Assembly: GCF_000006765.1 (NCBI RefSeq)
Contig: NC_002516.2
Strand: one strand, 5' to 3'
From: Pseudomonas aeruginosa PAO1
Lineage (GTDB): Bacteria; Pseudomonadota; Gammaproteobacteria; Pseudomonadales; Pseudomonadaceae
Length of the DNA: 64,000 nucleotides
Below the pieces are notes generated by a model. It saw only the letters and a program-made list of their open reading frames with translations, was not told where the DNA came from and did not search any database. Of the stretch, positions 1,385-53,408 are shown piece by piece; position 1 is the first letter of the stretch, and each line of letters starts with the position of its first letter. The position numbers and the translations under genes were made by a program.

Positions 1385-3387
1385 GCCTGCTCCTCTCCCC
1401 GGCCATCCCGCGTGGGCGTGCGCACCAGGCGCCAGGGCAGCGCCCGGCGCAATGCGCGCAGACGCAACCCTGGATCATCGGCACCGCCGTGTCCATAGCG
1501 TTGCGCTTCGAACGCGCCGACGAAGGCCGCGATGGCTGGCGCCTGCGCCGGCAGGACGCGGGCGGCGCGCTCGCCGTAGGAGCGTAGCCCTTCGCCGGGG
1601 GAACGGCGCAGGCCATGCATCTCCAGCAGGCGTTCGAAGCGGCGCAGTTGGCGGCTGCGCAGATCGCCACGGCCTTGCCAGGGCTTGAGCAGGAACAGCG
1701 CGAGCAGACCGACCGACAATATCGCCGCGGCACCGAGCAACAGGCCCAGTCGGGTCGGATCGAGCCCGCCGAACCAGCGCTGCAGGAAGGCGCCCTGCTG
1801 CTCACCCTGGTAGGCCAGGACCCAGCGTTGCCAGCCGTAGTTCAGGCTGTCCCAGGCCAGACGCATGTCGTTGAGCCAGGGCAGGCCACGGTAGCGCAAC
1901 GGCGACAGCGGCGCGTCGGCGAGGTACTCGCTGTCTCCGGCCAGGGCCTGCTCCAGCCCCTGTTCGATCCGTTCGGGCGCCACCTGGTAGGTCGGGTCGA
2001 CGCTCAGCCAGCCCTGCTCCGGCTGCCAATACTCGACCCAGGCGTGGGCGTCGAACTGATGCACCAGCAGGTAGTTGCCCGCCGGATTCAGCTCGCCGCC
2101 CTGGTAACCGGCCACCACTCGCGCAGGAATGCCCGCGGCGCGCAGGACGAAAGCCATCGCCCCGGCGTAATGCGCGCAGAAGCCGCTGCGCGTGTCGAAC
2201 AGGAAATCGTCCACCCCGTCGGCGCCGGTCGCTGGCGGTTTCAGGGTGTAGGCGAAGGGCTCGTGGTTGAAGCGCTGCAACAGGGCCGCGACCAGCGCCT
2301 GCGGTTGCGCATGGGCCTGGCGCAACTCGTCGGCCAGCGCTCGCGCGCGCGGATTGCCGTGCATCGGCAACTGCAGGTTGCGCCAGCGCGTGCGCGGATC
2401 GATGCTGGACTCGCGCAGCGCCTGTGGCCAGGAACTGACTCGGTAGAACAGACGTTGCTCGACCGGCTGCCGCCGCTGCAGGTGGAAATCGCTCATCAGG
2501 CGCGTGTCGGTCTGGTCGGTCTGCGCCACGTCGAGGGCGAACAGCCAGGGCTGCGAACTGGGCTGCATGATCACGTCGTAGCGCAGCTCAGGGCCACGCT
2601 TCTGCCAGTGCAGAGCATCCTCGCCCGACCATTGCGGCGCCTGAGCCCAACGTCGTCCGTCGAAACGCTCCATGGTCAAGGCGCGCCAGTAGAGCTGCTC
2701 GCGCGGCGGCAGTGCGCCCTCGAAGCGGACCCGGAACGCCAGTTCGGCGGAGCGCCCAAGCTCGGCGATATCCCCTGGCGCCATGCTCTCCGAGAGTCCG
2801 GTGACCCCCTTGTTGCCGGGCATCGGCAACGACCACAGCGGCCCCAGGCGGGGGAAGAACAGGAACAGCAGGAGCATCAGCGGCAGCGCCTGCAGCAACA
2901 GCCCGCCGGCCAGCCGCAGGGTCGGCCAGGGCCGGCTGGCGAAAGCGCTCTGCTGCAAGCCGATCAGCGCCGCCAGCAACGCGGTCACCGGCAGCAGGCT
3001 GTACAGCGCGGCGAGGAAACCGTCGTCGAACAGGTAGCCCACCACCACTGCGAAGAAACCGAGGAACACCAGTACCAGCGCATCGCGGCGGGTCTTCATT
3101 TCCACCAGTTTGAGGATGAACGCGGCGATCAGCAGCACCGCCCCCGCGTCCAGGCCCACCAGGCTGCCGCGCGACAACCAGACCCCGGCCCCGGCGAGCA
3201 GCGCCAGGGCCAGCTTGACCCAGGCGCGCGGATAGCCGGCACGCATGCGGAAGACCTGCACCCGCCAGGCCGCGCAACCGAGCCACATGGCCGCGATCCA
3301 CAGCGGCATGTAGGCCAGGTGCGGCAGGATCACCAGTACCTGCGCCACCAGCAGCCAGACCAGCGCGACCCGCGGAATCGCGTTCAT
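1381..3387 (-). CDS. tgpA: Membrane-anchored transglutaminase-like protein TgpA (PA2873)
   Basis: 668 aa from ATG 3387 (MNAIPRVALVWLL); N-terminal TM segments; GFCAHYAGAMA (Cys) and HAWVEYW...D transglutaminase triad. Confidence 0.92.
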   Translation of the reverse strand: MNAIPRVALVWLLVAQVLVILPHLAYMPLWIAAMWLGCAAWRVQVFRMRAGYPRAWVKLALALLAGAGVWLSRGSLVGLDAGAVLLIAAFILKLVEMKTRRDALVLVFLGFFAVVVGYLFDDGFLAALYSLLPVTALLAALIGLQQSAFASRPWPTLRLAGGLLLQALPLMLLLFLFFPRLGPLWSLPMPGNKGVTGLSESMAPGDIAELGRSAELAFRVRFEGALPPREQLYWRALTMERFDGRRWAQAPQWSGEDALHWQKRGPELRYDVIMQPSSQPWLFALDVAQTDQTDTRLMSDFHLQRRQPVEQRLFYRVSSWPQALRESSIDPRTRWRNLQLPMHGNPRARALADELRQAHAQPQALVAALLQRFNHEPFAYTLKPPATGADGVDDFLFDTRSGFCAHYAGAMAFVLRAAGIPARVVAGYQGGELNPAGNYLLVHQFDAHAWVEYWQPEQGWLSVDPTYQVAPERIEQGLEQALAGDSEYLADAPLSPLRYRGLPWLNDMRLAWDSLNYGWQRWVLAYQGEQQGAFLQRWFGGLDPTRLGLLLGAAAILSVGLLALFLLKPWQGRGDLRSRQLRRFERLLEMHGLRRSPGEGLRSYGERAARVLPAQAPAIAAFVGAFEAQRYGHGGADDPGLRLRALRRALPWRLVRTPTRDGRGEEQA

Positions 3388-5483: not shown

Positions 5484-6182
5484 TCAGCCCAGTTCGGCGA
5501 CGATCGCCGCCAGCGCCTTGGCCGGGTCGGCGGCCTGGCTGATCGGCCGGCCGATCACCAGGTAATCGGAGCCGGCGTCCAGGGCCTGGCGCGGGGTGAG
5601 GATGCGCCGCTGGTCGTCCTGGGCGCTGCCGGCCGGGCGGATGCCCGGCGTGACCAGTTGCAGGCCCGGATGGGCGGCCTTCAGCGCCGGCGCTTCCTGG
5701 GCCGAGCAGACCAGGCCGTCCATGCCGGCCTTCTGCGCCAGGGCGGCGAGGCGCAACACCTGCTCCTGGGGCTCGATGTCGAGGCCGATGCCCGCCAGGT
5801 CCTCGCGCTCCATGCTGGTCAGCACGGTCACGCCGATGAGCAACGGCCTGGGCCCGCTGAAGGCCTCCAGCGTCTCGCGGCAGGCGGCCATCATGCGCAG
5901 GCCGCCGGAGCAGTGCACGTTGACCATCCACACGCCCATCTCGGCGGCGGCCTTCACCGCCATCGCCGTGGTGTTCGGGATGTCGTGGAATTTCAGGTCG
6001 AGGAACACCTCGAAGCCCTTGCCACGCAAGGTCTCGACTATACCCGCGGCACAACTGGTGAAGAGTTCCTTGCCGACCTTCACCCGGCACAGTTTCGGGT
6101 CCAGCTGATCGGCCAGCGCCAGGGCGGCCTCACGGGTGGGGAAATCCAGGGCGACGATGATGGGGGACTGGCAGGCGGACAT
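5484..6182 (-). CDS. pyrF: Orotidine 5'-phosphate decarboxylase
   Basis: 232 aa; [33 protein letters not shown]. Confidence 0.98.
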
Positions 6183-7172: not shown

Positions 7173-7289
7173 GGGCAGGCCCCTTCTCTCTATTCGGGAT
7201 GGCTGGACAGTCTATCCATGCCACCTACGTTTATCCAAAGAACCCGGACCAATAGCCTGGAGTCCCTACTCTACTTCCTGGATCCGCAG

Positions 7290-7859
7290 ATGCCCCATGC
7301 AGCGCTTTTGCTTCCTCCCAGCGCGTCCCCGCTGCCGGAAGTGGTCGGTTTCTGGCGCGATGCCGGCCCTACCCTCTGGTTCGCCAGGAACGCCGATTTC
7401 GACCGGCGCTTCCGCGAGCGCTTCACCCACCTCTACGAGCTTGCCTGCGCCAACGCGCTGCGCCCGGCTGCCGATGAAGCCGAGGACCATCTCGGCCTGC
7501 TGTTGCTGCTCGACCAGTACCCGCGCAACGCCTTCCGTGGAACCCCGCGCATGTACGCCAGCGACGCCCAAGCGCGGCGCTGGGCGGAGCGGGCTCTGGG
7601 ACAAGGCCTCGACCGCCAGGTCGGGGACGCGCTGCGGCTGTTCTTCTACCTGCCGTTCGCCCATGCCGAGAACCTTGCCGACCAGGATCGCTCGGTAGCG
7701 CTGAACCACGGACTCGGCCAGCCCTTCCTCGCCCACGCTCGTGAGCATCGCGAGATCATCCGCCGCTTCGGGCGCTTTCCCCATCGCAATCCGATCCTCG
7801 GTCGCCCGTCCAGCGCCGAGGAACTCGCCTTCCTCGCCGCCGGCGGCTTCGCCGGCTGA
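7290..7859 (+). CDS. DUF924 family protein (PA2878-like)
   Basis: 189 aa from ATG 7290; VVGFW..AGP..WF, LLLDQYPRNAFRG, HAENLADQ, IIRRFGRFPHRNPILGR. Confidence 0.88.
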   Translation: MPHAALLLPPSASPLPEVVGFWRDAGPTLWFARNADFDRRFRERFTHLYELACANALRPAADEAEDHLGLLLLLDQYPRNAFRGTPRMYASDAQARRWAERALGQGLDRQVGDALRLFFYLPFAHAENLADQDRSVALNHGLGQPFLAHAREHREIIRRFGRFPHRNPILGRPSSAEELAFLAAGGFAG

Positions 7860-7881: not shown

Positions 7882-8772
7882 CTAGATAGGCAGGTCGCGA
7901 TCCAGCAAGCGGTCCAGCAACCAGTTGGCCGCCGGTCCCAACGGCCGCTGCCGCGACCAGACCACGTCCACCGCCTGGCTGCGCGGCCAGCCGGACACCG
8001 GCAACTCCTTCAGCCGTCCGTTGGCGTAGCCGCTGACCAGCCAGCGCGGCAGCTCGGCCCAACCGAAGCCGTGGGTGGCCATTTCCAGCAGCAACAGGTA
8101 GTTGGGCGCCGACCAGCAGCGCCCGCCGCTGGACGGCAGGCCGTCGTTGATCGCCGCGCCGGTCTCGCTATAGGTGTTCAGGCGCAGCAGACGCCATTCG
8201 GAAAGGTCGCGCTCGCTGACCCGCTCCAGACCCGCCAGCGGATGGTCGACGGCGGCGAACAGGCCGAACTCGGCACGCTCGGCGACCGCCGCCACGCCCA
8301 GCTCCGGCGGGTAGTGCGGCTGCGCGGCGAGCAGGCCGAGGGTGGCGCGGCCGCGGCTGACCTGGGCGATCACGTCCTGGTCCTCGGCGATCAGGCATTC
8401 GAACTCCAGCTCAGGGTAACGCTCGTCCAGTTCGGCCAGGCGCGCCTCGTAGCGCGCCGAATGGTAGGTGTCGGATAGCGCCAGGGTCACCCGTGGCTCC
8501 GAGCCGCCGGCGAGCAGCGCGGCGACCCGGCGCAGGCGGTCGGATGCGCCGAGGACCTCCTCGACCCGTCCCAGCAGGGTGCGTCCGGCCTCGGTCAGTT
8601 GCGGCTGGCGGCCACTGCGATCGAAGAGTTCCAGGCCGAGGTCGATCTCCAGCCGGGCAATGGCCTCGCTGACGGTCGACTGGCTCTTGCCCAGCTTGCG
8701 CGCGGCGGCGCTGAAGGAGCCGAGGGAAACGGCCTGGACGAAGGCCTCGAGGGATTCGGGCGACAAATGCAT
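7882..8772 (-). CDS. LysR-type regulator of the divergent PACE gene (PA2879-like)
   Basis: 296 aa from ATG 8772; LEAFVQAVSLGSFSAAARKLGKSQSTVSEAI HTH. Confidence 0.92.
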   Translation of the reverse strand: MHLSPESLEAFVQAVSLGSFSAAARKLGKSQSTVSEAIARLEIDLGLELFDRSGRQPQLTEAGRTLLGRVEEVLGASDRLRRVAALLAGGSEPRVTLALSDTYHSARYEARLAELDERYPELEFECLIAEDQDVIAQVSRGRATLGLLAAQPHYPPELGVAAVAERAEFGLFAAVDHPLAGLERVSERDLSEWRLLRLNTYSETGAAINDGLPSSGGRCWSAPNYLLLLEMATHGFGWAELPRWLVSGYANGRLKELPVSGWPRSQAVDVVWSRQRPLGPAANWLLDRLLDRDLPI

Positions 8773-47812: not shown

Positions 47813-48406
47813 TCAGAGCAGCAGGGCGGCCCAGGCCGATGCCAGCAACAACAGCGCCATGCCCTGGTTGAAGCGTTTCATCAGCGACGGCGAGCGCAGC
47901 AGCCGCGCGCTGCCGACGCCGAGCAAGGCCCAACTGGCCAGGCACGGCAGCGAAACCAGGAAGAACAGCAATGCCAGCAGGCCGATCCGCCCGGCCTGTC
48001 CGGCGCCTTCCCCGGCGAACAGTGCCAGCGCGGCGAGGGCCATCATCCAGGCCTTGGGATTGACCAGTTGCAACGCCGCGCCGCCGAGCACGCCGAGGCG
48101 CCGCGGCGGCTCCGCGCCGTCGATGCCGCCCGCGCTGCGGAACAGGCTCCAGGCCAGGTAGCTGAGCCAGCCGACGCCGAGCCAGGCGAGCCCCTGCTGG
48201 AGCAGCGGATGGCGTCGCAGCAACTCGCCCAGGCCGAGCCCGAGCAGCAGGATCAGCGCCGCCACCGCCGCGCAGGCGCCGAGCACGATCGGCCAGGCGG
48301 CGGCCAGGCCGTGGCGCTGGCTGTTGCTCAGGACCAGGATGTTGGTCGGTCCGGGGGTGATCGAGGCGACGACGGCGAACAGCAGGAAGGGCACGAGGGA
48401 TTGCAT
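47813..48406 (-). CDS. LysE/RhtB-family exporter (PA2916-like)
   Basis: 197 aa; SITPGPTN, LQLVNPKAW. Confidence 0.92.
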   Translation of the reverse strand: MQSLVPFLLFAVVASITPGPTNILVLSNSQRHGLAAAWPIVLGACAAVAALILLLGLGLGELLRRHPLLQQGLAWLGVGWLSYLAWSLFRSAGGIDGAEPPRRLGVLGGAALQLVNPKAWMMALAALALFAGEGAGQAGRIGLLALLFFLVSLPCLASWALLGVGSARLLRSPSLMKRFNQGMALLLLASAWAALLL

Positions 48407-48456: not shown

Positions 48457-49293
48457 TCAGTCTGGAAGCTGGGTGCACTGCCGGCGGTAGGCCGCCGGGG
48501 TCATCCCGTAGGCGCGCCGGAACCAGCGGCCGAGATGGCTCTGGTCGGCGAAACCGAGAGCGCTGGCGAGGTCCGCCGGTTGCCCGCCGACAGCGAGCAT
48601 CTGCCGCGCCTTGGCCAGGCGCAACTGGACCAGGTAGGCGTAGGGTGGCAAGCCGTAGGCGGCCTTGAATGCACGGTTCAGGCGGAAGCGGTCGGTGCCG
48701 CAGGCGCTGGCCAGCTCGTCCAGGCCGATGTCCTGGTAGAAGTGCGCATGCAGGTAGTCGCGGGCTTTCTGCGCCACCAGCGGCAGGCGCGGATCGAATG
48801 GCTTCGCCTCGCGCCAGCCGAGGTGCACGCGCAGCCGCTCCAGCACCAGCTCCAGGGCGGTCTGCCGCAGCAGTCGCAGCTCGCGGCCATGCAGGACGCG
48901 GAAGGCCTGGGCGATGGCCAGGGTCAGGCGCGGGTCTTCGGTGAGGTTGGCGTGGAAGCCGGGGTCGCGGTCGCTGGGCGCATCGTCGAAGGTCGCCCGC
49001 AGTTCGCGCCGCAGCCAGTCCGGCTGCAGGTACAGCATCGAGTAGGTGAAGCCGCCGGCGATCGGCGCGCGACCGTCGTGGATCTCCCCCGGTTCGACCA
49101 GGAATACCTGGCCGGCGGTGCTGTCGTGTCGGCGTCGGCGGCAGTTGAATTGCTGCACGCCGATCTCGGTGTAGCCGATCAGGTAGCTGTCGTGCCAGTG
49201 CGGATCGTAGGCGTGGCCCTCGAAATGGGCGCGCAGGGTCTCGATCCCGGTCTCGGCGTCGCGGGCCAGGTCGATCCAGTCTCGGCTCCCCAT
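48457..49293 (-). CDS. AraC-family regulator with cupin domain (PA2917-like)
   Basis: 278 aa; YDPHWHDSY, C-terminal LGFADQSHLGRWFRRAYGMTP. Confidence 0.93.
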   Translation of the reverse strand: MGSRDWIDLARDAETGIETLRAHFEGHAYDPHWHDSYLIGYTEIGVQQFNCRRRRHDSTAGQVFLVEPGEIHDGRAPIAGGFTYSMLYLQPDWLRRELRATFDDAPSDRDPGFHANLTEDPRLTLAIAQAFRVLHGRELRLLRQTALELVLERLRVHLGWREAKPFDPRLPLVAQKARDYLHAHFYQDIGLDELASACGTDRFRLNRAFKAAYGLPPYAYLVQLRLAKARQMLAVGGQPADLASALGFADQSHLGRWFRRAYGMTPAAYRRQCTQLPD

Positions 49294-49503
49294 CGTGCGT
49301 CAGGTCTTCCCACTCGTTGGTTTCGTCGCCGCGACTATAACGCGCCCGTCCCGGGGTTCTAGAAGATTCGTGCAGGCGGCTGCGCTCCTCCGGAGGCGGG
49401 AATTGATCGGCGTTTCTGGACAATCTATCCAGGCCGCCGCGATTACTCCGCAAGGCCGCCCTCCCTAGACTGGGTTCTCCACTCACCGCAGGAGAAACAC
49501 CCC

Positions 49504-50277
49504 ATGGTCGACCACTCCATCAAAGGCAAGACCGTCCTCATCACCGGCGGCGCCAAGAACCTGGGCGGGCTGATCGCCCGTGATCTCGCCGCCCACGGCG
49601 CGAAGGCGATCACCATCCACTACAACAGCGCCGCGAGCAAGGCCGATGCCGACGCCACCGTCGCCGCGCTGCAGGCAGCCGGAGCCAAGGCGGTAGCGCT
49701 GCAGGGCGATCTCACCAGCGCCGCGGCCATGGAAAAGCTGTTCGCCGACGCCATCGCCGCGGTGGGCAAGCCGGACATCGCCATCAACACCGTCGGCAAG
49801 GTGCTGAAGAAACCCATCACCGAGATCAGCGAGACCGAATACGACGAGATGAGCGCGGTCAATTCCAAGTCTGCGTTCTTCTTCCTGCGCGAAGCCGGCA
49901 AGCACGTCAACGACAACGGCAAGATCTGCACCCTGGTGACCTCTCTGCTTGGCGCCTATACCCCGTACTACGCCGCCTATGCCGGCACCAAGGCGCCGGT
50001 GGAGCACTTCACCCGTGCCGCTTCCAAGGAGTTCGGCGCGCGCGGCATCTCGGTCACCGCGGTCGGCCCGGGCCCCATGGACACGCCCTTCTTCTACCCC
50101 GCCGAAGGTGCCGATGCGGTGGACTACCTGAAGAACGCCGCGGCCTTGTCGCCGTTCTCCAAAACCGGCCTGACCGACATCGACGACGTGGTGCCGTTCA
50201 TCCGCCACCTGGTCAGCGAAGGTTGGTGGATCACCGGCCAGACCATCCTCATCAACGGCGGCTTCTCCACCAAGTGA
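49504..50277 (+). CDS. Short-chain dehydrogenase/reductase (PA2918-like)
   Basis: 257 aa; ITGGAKNLGG, YAGTK catalytic YxxxK, ITGQTILINGG; AGGAG RBS. Confidence 0.93.
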   Translation: MVDHSIKGKTVLITGGAKNLGGLIARDLAAHGAKAITIHYNSAASKADADATVAALQAAGAKAVALQGDLTSAAAMEKLFADAIAAVGKPDIAINTVGKVLKKPITEISETEYDEMSAVNSKSAFFFLREAGKHVNDNGKICTLVTSLLGAYTPYYAAYAGTKAPVEHFTRAASKEFGARGISVTAVGPGPMDTPFFYPAEGADAVDYLKNAAALSPFSKTGLTDIDDVVPFIRHLVSEGWWITGQTILINGGFSTK

Positions 50278-50327: not shown

Positions 50328-50585
50328 ATGCACGTGACCCTGGTAATCGCCGGCGGCATCGTCCTGCTCGGCCTGTTCCTGCTCTTCGGCAAACTCTGGG
50401 ATGCCGGGCCGGCGCTCGCTGCCGGCCTGTTCCTGCCGACCTGGCTGGCCGTCGCGCTGGTCAACCTGTGGGTCGGCGTCCAGCACGCCGGCTACGGCTT
50501 GCGCGAAGAACTGCCGATCCTGCTGCTGGTCTTCCTGGTCCCGGCGGCACTGGCCGGCGTGGCGATCTGGCTGGCGCCGCGCTAG
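50328..50585 (+). CDS. Small membrane protein (PA2919-like)
   Basis: 85 aa from ATG 50328; three hydrophobic segments; NLWVGVQHAGY..REELP. Confidence 0.8.
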   Translation: MHVTLVIAGGIVLLGLFLLFGKLWDAGPALAAGLFLPTWLAVALVNLWVGVQHAGYGLREELPILLLVFLVPAALAGVAIWLAPR

Positions 50586-52318: not shown

Positions 52319-53272
52319 TCAGACTAGCAGGCGCAGGGTTTCGAACAGGCGCCGGTCATCCTTCTTCGCCGAGCGGGCGTGGCGGCGGATCGCCTGCAGC
52401 AGGCACTCGACGAAACATTGCGCCGGATTGCTGAGGGCTCCGCCGCGCCGGGTGATGATGCCCAGCCGTCGTGGCTCGAAGGTTTCCCGCAGCGCCAGCG
52501 GCACCACCCGGCCGAGCAACGGCGGGGCGGCGCCGATGATCGCCGGCACCCAGGTGCACATGTCGGCCTGCTCCACCAGGGTCTGCAGGATCGCCACGGA
52601 GTGCGCGCGGACGATGCGCCGCTCGTCGATCAAGGCACCGTGGCGCCAGAACAGCTCGCGCATCAGGGCGTCGTGGCCGTCGCCGGTGTAGTTCAACGCC
52701 CAGTCCTGTTCCAGCAGCTCGTGGATCGAGCCGCAACCCGCCAGCGGATGCCCCTGGCGGACCAGCACCGCGGTGTCGTAGTCGAGCAGCTTCTCGCAGG
52801 CGAATTCCTGGGCCGCCTGGGCGCCGTGCAGCGGGCCGATGGCGAAATCCATGCTGCCGTCGCGAAGCAATGGCTGGGCCACCGCCATCAGGCTTTCGAA
52901 AAGCTCCAGGCGCACCTCCGGCATGCGCTCGCGGAACGCCTGCACCGCCTCCGAGAGGAAGGTCAGCGCCACCCAAGGCGTCACCCCGATGCACAGCCGG
53001 CCGCTGGCCTGGCCACGCAGGTGGTCGAGTTCGACCTGCGCGTGCTCCAGTTGCTTGAGCACCAGCCGGGCGTGGATCAGCAGCGCCTTGCCGTATTCGG
53101 TGAAGGTCAGGCCGCTGGGCGTGCGGACGAACAGCGGCAGATGCTGTTCGGTTTCCAGTTCGCGCAGCGCGCGGGTCACGGCCGCCTGGGAAATCCCCAG
53201 GGCGCGGGCGGCGGCGCGGATGCCGCCGGCGTCGGCACTGGCGACCAGGGCTTGCAACTGGTGGAGTTTCAC
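52319..53272 (-). CDS. LysR-type regulator (PA2921-like)
   Basis: From GTG 53272: KLHQLQALVASADAGGIRAAARALGISQAAVTRALRELE. Confidence 0.9.
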   Translation of the reverse strand: MKLHQLQALVASADAGGIRAAARALGISQAAVTRALRELETEQHLPLFVRTPSGLTFTEYGKALLIHARLVLKQLEHAQVELDHLRGQASGRLCIGVTPWVALTFLSEAVQAFRERMPEVRLELFESLMAVAQPLLRDGSMDFAIGPLHGAQAAQEFACEKLLDYDTAVLVRQGHPLAGCGSIHELLEQDWALNYTGDGHDALMRELFWRHGALIDERRIVRAHSVAILQTLVEQADMCTWVPAIIGAAPPLLGRVVPLALRETFEPRRLGIITRRGGALSNPAQCFVECLLQAIRRHARSAKKDDRRLFETLRLLV

Positions 53273-53285
53273 GGGCTTACCGAGG

Positions 53286-53304
53286 TGACAACGAAAGGTT
53301 GTCA
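53286..53304. promoter_or_regulatory. LysR operator between PA2921 and the amidohydrolase operon
   Basis: Perfect 7-5-7 dyad TGACAAC-GAAAG-GTTGTCA. Confidence 0.7.
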
Positions 53305-53408
53305 TCATAGCCAAAGCGAGCCTCCCCGCCAGTCCCCCGCTTGCCTACCATCGGCTTCGACAACGCCCCGCCGCCCACCGGTCGGAGCCCTTGAGGAGAA
53401 CAAGAAGA

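Follow-up and report, generated by a model that had tools for sequence, protein, structure and literature searches.

The intergenic region between bvlR (PA2877) and the DUF924 gene PA2878 of Pseudomonas aeruginosa PAO1 and the region upstream of the SDR gene PA2918, 42 kb away, are probably copies of one ancestral LysR-type promoter module, which would have been split in this organism and would be read by BvlR at both places. The two stretches match well beyond chance. In other bacteria the SDR gene is linked to a LysR-type regulator (LTTR) gene and the layout of the SDR promoter is conserved, and BvlR itself belongs to this family of regulators. Taken together, these observations indicate that BvlR very probably controls both promoters. 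Positions are given in the window, that is, the whole stretch of 64,000 nucleotides that was analysed. It corresponds to PAO1 3224001-3288000, as fixed from gene coordinates in the supplementary table of PMC8041468, in which PA2916 (3271813-3272406) is the window ORF 47813-48406, PA2918 (3273504-3274277) the ORF 49504-50277 and PA2878 (3231218-3231859) the frame ending at 7859.

At the first site, pyrF (5484-6182, minus strand) and bvlR are followed by the DUF924 gene and by a second LysR gene on the minus strand (Table 1). bvlR, which is equated with PA2877 and PA14_26880 in PMC10687435, is divergent from the DUF924 gene across an intergenic region of 117 bp. At the second site the order is AraC-family gene, SDR gene and a hydrophobic ORF of 85 aa, and the next gene, named by synteny with the P. 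paraeruginosa locus, encodes a convergent chemoreceptor. Both P. aeruginosa and P. paraeruginosa have the AraC gene in divergent orientation to PA2918. PA2918 is assigned to the NCBIfam equivalog NF009385 (492 bits, cutoff 296) and its closest solved structure is 5thk, a putative dehydrogenase. The closest solved structure for the DUF924 protein is 2i6h, the hypothetical protein Atu0120. The small ORF, presumably cotranscribed with the SDR gene, has no Pfam or NCBIfam match. In the PAO1 annotation used by PMC8041468, PA2878 begins at window position 7218. An ATG at this position overlaps the last base of the operator, would place the -10 element within the coding sequence and is missing in P. 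paraeruginosa. Translation from 7290 begins with a conserved MPHA, and PA2878 homologs elsewhere are also 189 aa long. We therefore prefer 7290 to the annotated 7218 as the likely start codon.

Table 1. Genes and predicted promoter elements at the bvlR-DUF924 and PA2918 sites (window positions).
Feature	Position	Strand	Basis or remark
bvlR (PA2877), LysR-type regulator, 297 aa	6279..7172	-	Pfam HTH_1 and LysR_substrate
DUF924 gene (PA2878), 189 aa	7290..7859	+	Pfam DUF924
Operator O1 CTGGACAGTCTATCCAT, CTGGAy-N5-rTCCAG family	7203..7219	+	22.0 bits with the foreign operator-only matrix
TTTATCC box	7230..7236	+	10 nt after O1, 17 nt before -10
-10-like TAGCCT	7253..7258	+	CTAGACT/CTAAGCT in the same family column
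AraC-family regulator (PA2917), divergent from SDR PA2918	48457..49293	-	outside the conserved module
ATTGATC, fits upstream box ATTGnnC	49402..49408	+	-14 to -8 from the operator
Operator O2 CTGGACAATCTATCCAG	49416..49432	+	top match in the window
TTACTCC, weaker copy of the TTATC box	49443..49449	+	same offset from the operator
-10-like TAGACT	49466..49471	+	family column, exact 34-nt spacing
SDR oxidoreductase (PA2918), 257 aa	49504..50277	+	Pfam adh_short
Small hydrophobic ORF, 85 aa, presumably PA2919	50328..50585	+	ORF conserved 3' of SDR

An earlier note on this DNA had reported an ungapped alignment of 7191-7260 with 49404-49473 at 42 of 70 positions, and our recount gives the same figure. 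It also holds that the core is identical at 15 of 16 positions, CTGGACAGTCTATCCA (7203-7218) against CTGGACAATCTATCCA (49416-49431), and that the spacing of 34 nt from TCCA to a -10-like element is exact, with 7219-7252 leading to TAGCCT and 49432-49465 to TAGACT. The dyad TGGA-N7-TCCA described in the note is present but falls short of the dyad of the family, which is wider, and the putative operator is accordingly redefined as the 17-bp dyad CTGGAy-N5-rTCCAG. A LysR-type layout had also been proposed. The positions of the secondary site and of the -10 are indeed conserved, although on their own they are not statistically significant. As to the proposal that the DUF924 gene and the remote SDR gene are both under BvlR control, with binding as a prediction from sequence, four comparative points support it: the SDR ortholog directly adjoins a BvlR-like LTTR gene elsewhere, often together with DUF924; the operator, a TTATC box and a TAGACT-like -10 lie at fixed spacing in those promoters; a matrix made from promoters outside P. 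aeruginosa singles out, within the window, the two sites of the note and no others; and at the bvlR-DUF924 region P. paraeruginosa shares these three blocks with PAO1 despite a diverged spacer and 5'UTR.

Orthologs of PA2918 with 79-89% identity are present in Achromobacter, Ectopseudomonas, Burkholderia, Serratia and many metagenome contigs. Linkage was counted over 78 metagenome SDR loci, P. aeruginosa-like loci excluded, and an LTTR was counted when it had at least 50% identity to BvlR. A BvlR-like LTTR gene (52-66% identity) lies directly beside the SDR gene at 57 of these 78 loci, and at 37 of the 42 that have enough flanking sequence. The 57 linked LTTR genes are either divergent (29) or downstream on the same strand (28), and a DUF924 gene is also found at 8 loci. 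Over all the comparisons made, LTTRs encoded beside an SDR ortholog are 52-72% identical to BvlR. In Achromobacter xylosoxidans A8 the LTTR gene is divergent from the SDR gene and its product is 58% identical to BvlR over the full length; in Ectopseudomonas toyotomiensis the order is SDR, an 84-aa ORF and a LysR gene whose product has 62% identity, again over the full length. The reverse test leads to the same neighbourhood. Among the matches listed, the best ones to BvlR outside P. aeruginosa and P. paraeruginosa are 64-72% identical, and the relatives in Variovorax (70%), Collimonas (68%) and Hahella (64%) are each encoded divergently from an SDR gene. The SDR gene stands alone in Collimonas and is followed by a small ORF in Variovorax and Hahella, the latter also with DUF924. 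An ORF of 84-89 aa after the SDR gene is shared by P. paraeruginosa, Ectopseudomonas, Achromobacter, Variovorax, Hahella and a P. aeruginosa island, with 46-69% identity by tblastn. In PAO1, bvlR adjoins the DUF924 gene of the module and the SDR gene itself is 42 kb away.

The complete module, with SDR, small ORF, DUF924 and LTTR genes unsplit, occurs in Hahella chejuensis (L099), in two metagenome contigs (L023 and L048) and in an accessory island of some P. aeruginosa genomes (L094-L096, 4001-6714), where it consists of SDR, an 87-aa ORF, DUF924 and LysR. The PAO1 arrangement resembles it in the four gene families and in the operator, TTATC box and -10 layout upstream of SDR. It differs in that the P. 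aeruginosa core genome has the module in two pieces, with the promoter present twice and DUF924 directly behind one of the copies. In each of the three genomes the island adjoins BrxR and type I restriction-modification genes, and in one of them (L094) IS66. The island operator, TTTTCTGGATGATCTATCCAG, differs little from both core sites and its LTTR is 58% identical to BvlR; with operators so similar, cross-talk between the island LTTR and BvlR is possible.

A search with BvlR over genome contigs gave 8 loci with one close ortholog, that of P. paraeruginosa, which is too few for footprinting. Gibbs sampling was run on the 160 nt upstream of SDR at 75 non-redundant loci, the P. aeruginosa core locus not among them. 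The sampling was not seeded by the window, and two accessory-island copies were included in it but left out of the matrices described below. It converges on TTTTTCTGGATAATCCATCC, mostly 85-125 nt before the SDR start codon, and the motif of the SDR promoters from outside P. aeruginosa reads TTTCTGGAyArTCyATCCAG. Two flavours of the operator can be distinguished, CTGGAy-N5-rTCCAG at all loci with a downstream LTTR and some divergent ones, and CTGAC-N7-GTCAG at many divergent loci, with CTG-N11-CAG common to both. Twenty-six promoters of the first flavour share a fixed layout of operator, 10 nt, (T/C)T(T/G)ATC, 17 nt and CTAGACT or CTAAGCT, these class-a promoters carrying TTATC or CTGATC where the bvlR site has its TTATC box. 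Both window sites fit this layout base for base (7203-7219, 7230-7235 and 7253-7258 at bvlR; 49416-49432, 49443-49448 and 49466-49471 at PA2918). Six promoters align without gaps from the operator through the -10, and between the LTTR-SDR region of Variovorax and the bvlR-DUF924 region the alignment runs from the operator through CAATAG(A/C)CTGG.

A 62-nt promoter matrix built solely from the 26 foreign promoters was used to scan the window. It places 49412-49473 first with 41.1 bits and 7199-7260 second with 21.1 bits; the third match scores -3.1 bits and the best score in 100 simulated windows is 7.8 bits. With an operator-only matrix, O2 scores 28.8 and O1 22.0 bits against a simulated maximum of 21.4. 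The downstream part taken alone, with TTATC box and -10, gives 2.0 bits at bvlR and 7.9 bits at PA2918, below the random maxima, and therefore the shared -10 and the conserved TCC pointed out in the note fit the layout without being independent evidence. With a mixed 24-nt matrix of both operator classes and the T-rich flank, the bvlR site comes third at 12.8 bits, a score reached in 34 of 100 simulated windows and not significant alone.

Upstream of the operator, 57 promoters carry an ATTGnnC box at a distance of 8-14 nt (A 0.89, T 0.86, T 0.91, G 0.68, C 0.74), in divergent and downstream-LTTR arrangements. This box accounts for the matches at the left end of the 70-nt alignment, and the bvlR promoter retains only TTCG of it. 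It may extend the LTTR site or belong to the promoter of the divergent gene. The genes of two more distant BvlR homologs (L002 and L003, 53% and 44% identical) are transcribed divergently from genes for an aldo/keto reductase-like protein and an unrelated SDR. Their promoters, upstream of position 3001, carry another, AT-rich repeat, ATCGAAT...TTCGAA, which indicates that operator specificity changes towards the margin of the family.

Family membership of BvlR is shown by sequence grouping as well as by gene neighbourhood. In a maximum-likelihood tree of LTTRs, the 57 SDR-linked proteins form a group with BvlR and its counterpart in P. paraeruginosa (support 93/91), while LTTRs linked to other genes and the two other LysR proteins of the window fall outside. 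The latter two genes, PA2879 (7882-8770, minus strand) and PA2921 (52319-53314, minus strand), named by the PMC8041468 coordinates, lie near the two sites; their products are 25-38% identical to BvlR in the HTH region and stand outside its family. The recognition helix, PRATVSAAVQQLE, varies little within the clade and is different in the outgroups. The nearest named NCBIfam LTTR models are those of E. coli YafC (216.8 bits, cutoff 470) and AaeR (170.8 bits, cutoff 425). BvlR scores best with these two, yet far below their cutoffs, so that it is not a member of either, and their targets and operators are unrelated to those of BvlR. Within the tree BvlR is sister to the SDR-linked clade and not nested in it. 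PA2918, on the other hand, nests deep in a tight SDR clade of 80-89% identity, a long way from the Variovorax, Collimonas and Hahella SDRs. BvlR and PA2918 may thus be of separate descent, an old bvlR-DUF924 remnant and an SDR unit acquired later without its LTTR. Since the operators are nearly identical, such separate histories leave the binding prediction unweakened, though they give room for another regulator.

It is conceivable, if unlikely, that the dyads are genuine LTTR operators but that BvlR serves only its own divergent promoter and PA2918 is under another regulator. Candidates for the latter would be an unrecognised family paralog encoded outside the window, the LTTR of the island where a strain has it, and the AraC neighbour PA2917. 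The discordant SDR and LTTR phylogenies are in line with this, as are the second family member of some strains, 58% identical to BvlR, and the AraC gene divergent from PA2918 in both species; the direct search for paralogs covered 64 kb of the genome. Against it, the two operators differ at only 1 of 16 core positions (2 of the 17 of the dyad) and both fit the family consensus, and no other P. aeruginosa protein appears among the best 120 matches to BvlR (down to 64% identity) or among the best 120 to the island LTTR (down to 72%). Among those matches and in the 64-kb window, BvlR is the only LTTR of the SDR-linked family seen in the core genome. PA2917 was rejected as a candidate for reading the dyad. 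In other taxa the SDR loci keep the operator and have no AraC neighbour, save for one weak AraC-like fragment of 32% identity (L075). AraC proteins normally read direct repeats and not a dyad of 17 bp. BvlR is left as the most probable reader at PA2918 as well as at its own promoter.

The comparison of PAO1 with P. paraeruginosa is informative at the bvlR-DUF924 region. The operator is identical at 15 of 17 positions and TTTATCCAA and ACCAATAGCCTGG are identical, whereas the 10-nt spacer matches at only 3 of 10 and the 5'UTR has diverged. This is a conservation footprint over the operator, TTTATCCAA and ACCAATAGCCTGG. The TTTATCC box is identical in P. paraeruginosa and Variovorax. At PA2918, O2 is identical in P. 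paraeruginosa, but nearly the whole intergenic region is as well, and hence conservation there is uninformative. The proteins of the bvlR neighbourhood differ in identity between the two species, with 75% for DUF924 (L001 2351-2887 against window 7290-7859), 91% for BvlR and 97% for PA2879; the DUF924 protein diverges unusually fast for the product of a core gene.

We consider it improbable that the ancestral promoter survives at the two sites only as an evolutionary relic, retained through recent descent but without any present use in regulation. The near-identity of the PA2918 region in P. paraeruginosa would agree with such a history, and so would the degenerate TTATC box at this site (TTACTC). 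The bvlR site speaks against it, as the operator, TTTATCCAA and the -10 block have been kept there while spacer and 5'UTR strongly diverged, and the genes behind both promoters are intact.

A different specificity has been reported for BvlR by HT-SELEX, with the motif TBRTTAACATGTTAAYVA for PA2877 (PMC8041468, supplementary file 9). The same seed is given five times in this file, including for NagR and, as a variant, for PA3771, and no seed in it contains CTGGA or TCCAG. The PA2877 motif is, like our dyad, a dimeric palindrome ascribed to the same protein, but its sequence, TTAACATGTTAA, is unrelated to CTGGAy-N5-rTCCAG, and it is absent from the own promoter of bvlR. NagR is a GntR-family regulator, and the assignment of the seed to unrelated regulators as well weakens the PA2877 motif as evidence, which suggests a recurrent artefact or non-specific enrichment in that dataset. 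Even so, this is the one published motif and the one experimental result for BvlR specificity, and it disagrees with the dyad. If TTAACATGTTAA were nevertheless the true specificity of BvlR, some other factor would have to read the dyad. This seems highly improbable, since no other candidate reader emerges from the seeds and the operator and the LTTR gene are found together in dozens of taxa.

In the literature searched, we found no direct BvlR target or credible operator. PA2877 is absent from the supplements of the ChIP-seq atlas, and the searchable literature has no mention of PA2918, PA2878 or PA2919, nor of a link between BvlR and PA2878 or PA2918. PMC10687435 cites bvlR as a regulator of the T3SS, cupA fimbriae, exotoxin A and microcolony formation, with T3SS, cupA and toxin A repressed according to McCarthy et al. 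2014 as cited there, and describes the bvlR mutant as NaOCl-sensitive.

The similarity of the two stretches was also examined by itself. With up to 3 mismatches allowed, the 16-mer core has no occurrence in the window beyond these two, and shuffled sequences give a mean of 0.23. When the 70-mer was slid along both strands of the window (mean 17.7 matches, sd 3.6), the best non-self match was 42, at 49404, and the binomial tail multiplied by 128,000 positions is 0.006. Outside the 16-mer core, 27 of 54 positions are still identical (P=8e-4). A similarity greater than chance is thereby confirmed. One 15/16 match in 64 kb is not rare and many regions had been scanned for the earlier note, but coincidence can be rejected with a negligible residual probability, as the foreign matrix picks both sites more than 24 bits above the third and the second-best match of the 70-mer is only 33/70.

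BvlR binding, the regulatory direction and the TSSs are predictions from sequence, and the following scheme would account for the observations. The ancestral promoter would have consisted of an ATTG box, the 17-bp dyad CTGGAy-N5-rTCCAG, 10 nt, a TTATC box, 17 nt and a TAGACT-like -10. In most bacteria it would drive an operon that encodes the SDR and a small membrane protein, at times also DUF924, with a dedicated LTTR gene adjoining, either divergent or at the end of the operon. In the P. aeruginosa group the operon would have undergone fission into bvlR and the divergent DUF924 gene (PA2877/PA2878) on the one side and SDR and the small ORF (PA2918/PA2919) on the other, 42 kb apart, each half retaining the ancestral promoter and the SDR half coming to lie next to an AraC gene unrelated to it. 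Both copies of the dyad would be bound by BvlR. Because O1 (dyad CTGGAC-AGTCT-ATCCAT) is situated 31-47 nt upstream of the bvlR ATG, a placement typical of negative autoregulation, we propose that BvlR represses its own transcription. Together with a co-inducer it would activate the weak PA2878 and PA2918-2919 promoters, where the TTATC box overlaps the -35 position.

The features of the two target promoters are consistent with this scheme. Both have a fair -10 (TAGCCT, TAGACT), a poor -35 (TTTATC, TTACTC) and a spacing of 17 nt. A sigma-70 consensus scan found no consensus promoter at either site, as is expected of an activator-dependent promoter. Transcription would start near 7265 (PAO1 3231265) for the DUF924 gene and near 49478 (PAO1 3273478) for PA2918, and the start codons of PA2878 and PA2918 lie 32-33 nt after the -10. 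If the TSS is about 7 nt after the -10, the centre of the operator falls at about -54 at both sites, O1 included. The TTTATCC box could be a -35-like element, the activation site of the LTTR, or both.

Classical LysR-type divergent promoters, such as those of CbnR, BenM/CatM and OxyR, combine autoregulation with a recognition site and an activation site. The bvlR arrangement is of this standard type in kind: the LTTR gene is divergent from its presumed target across a short intergenic region, an interrupted dyad of 15-17 bp lies upstream of the target -35 and overlaps the leader of the regulator gene, and a weak -35 is accompanied by a second conserved box at the -35 position. Unlike the classical promoters, it has a dyad of the form CTG-N11-CAG in place of the textbook T-N11-A, with a centre predicted at about -54 as against about -65, and the operator recurs 42 kb away, at a second promoter without an adjacent LTTR gene. 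The mechanism itself is not surprising and the regulatory architecture is ordinary.

For BvlR, the analysis provides a defined 17-bp operator with a position matrix, the first-line candidate targets PA2878 and PA2918-2919, a corrected likely start of PA2878 and a rationale for regarding control of a conserved oxidoreductase module as its primary job. We tentatively suggest, as one possibility among others, that BvlR, known so far only as a 'virulence regulator', is the sensor-regulator of a small, widely conserved three-gene detoxification or redox unit (SDR, small membrane protein and DUF924) that was split, with duplication of its promoter, in P. aeruginosa; an SDR unit that arrived by horizontal transfer, having lost its LTTR, may even have come under the control of the old bvlR-DUF924 remnant. 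If so, the effects on T3SS and cupA and the NaOCl sensitivity would be downstream consequences of that three-gene unit. The two sites make the BvlR regulon directly testable and offer a handle on DUF924 and on the NF009385 SDR family.
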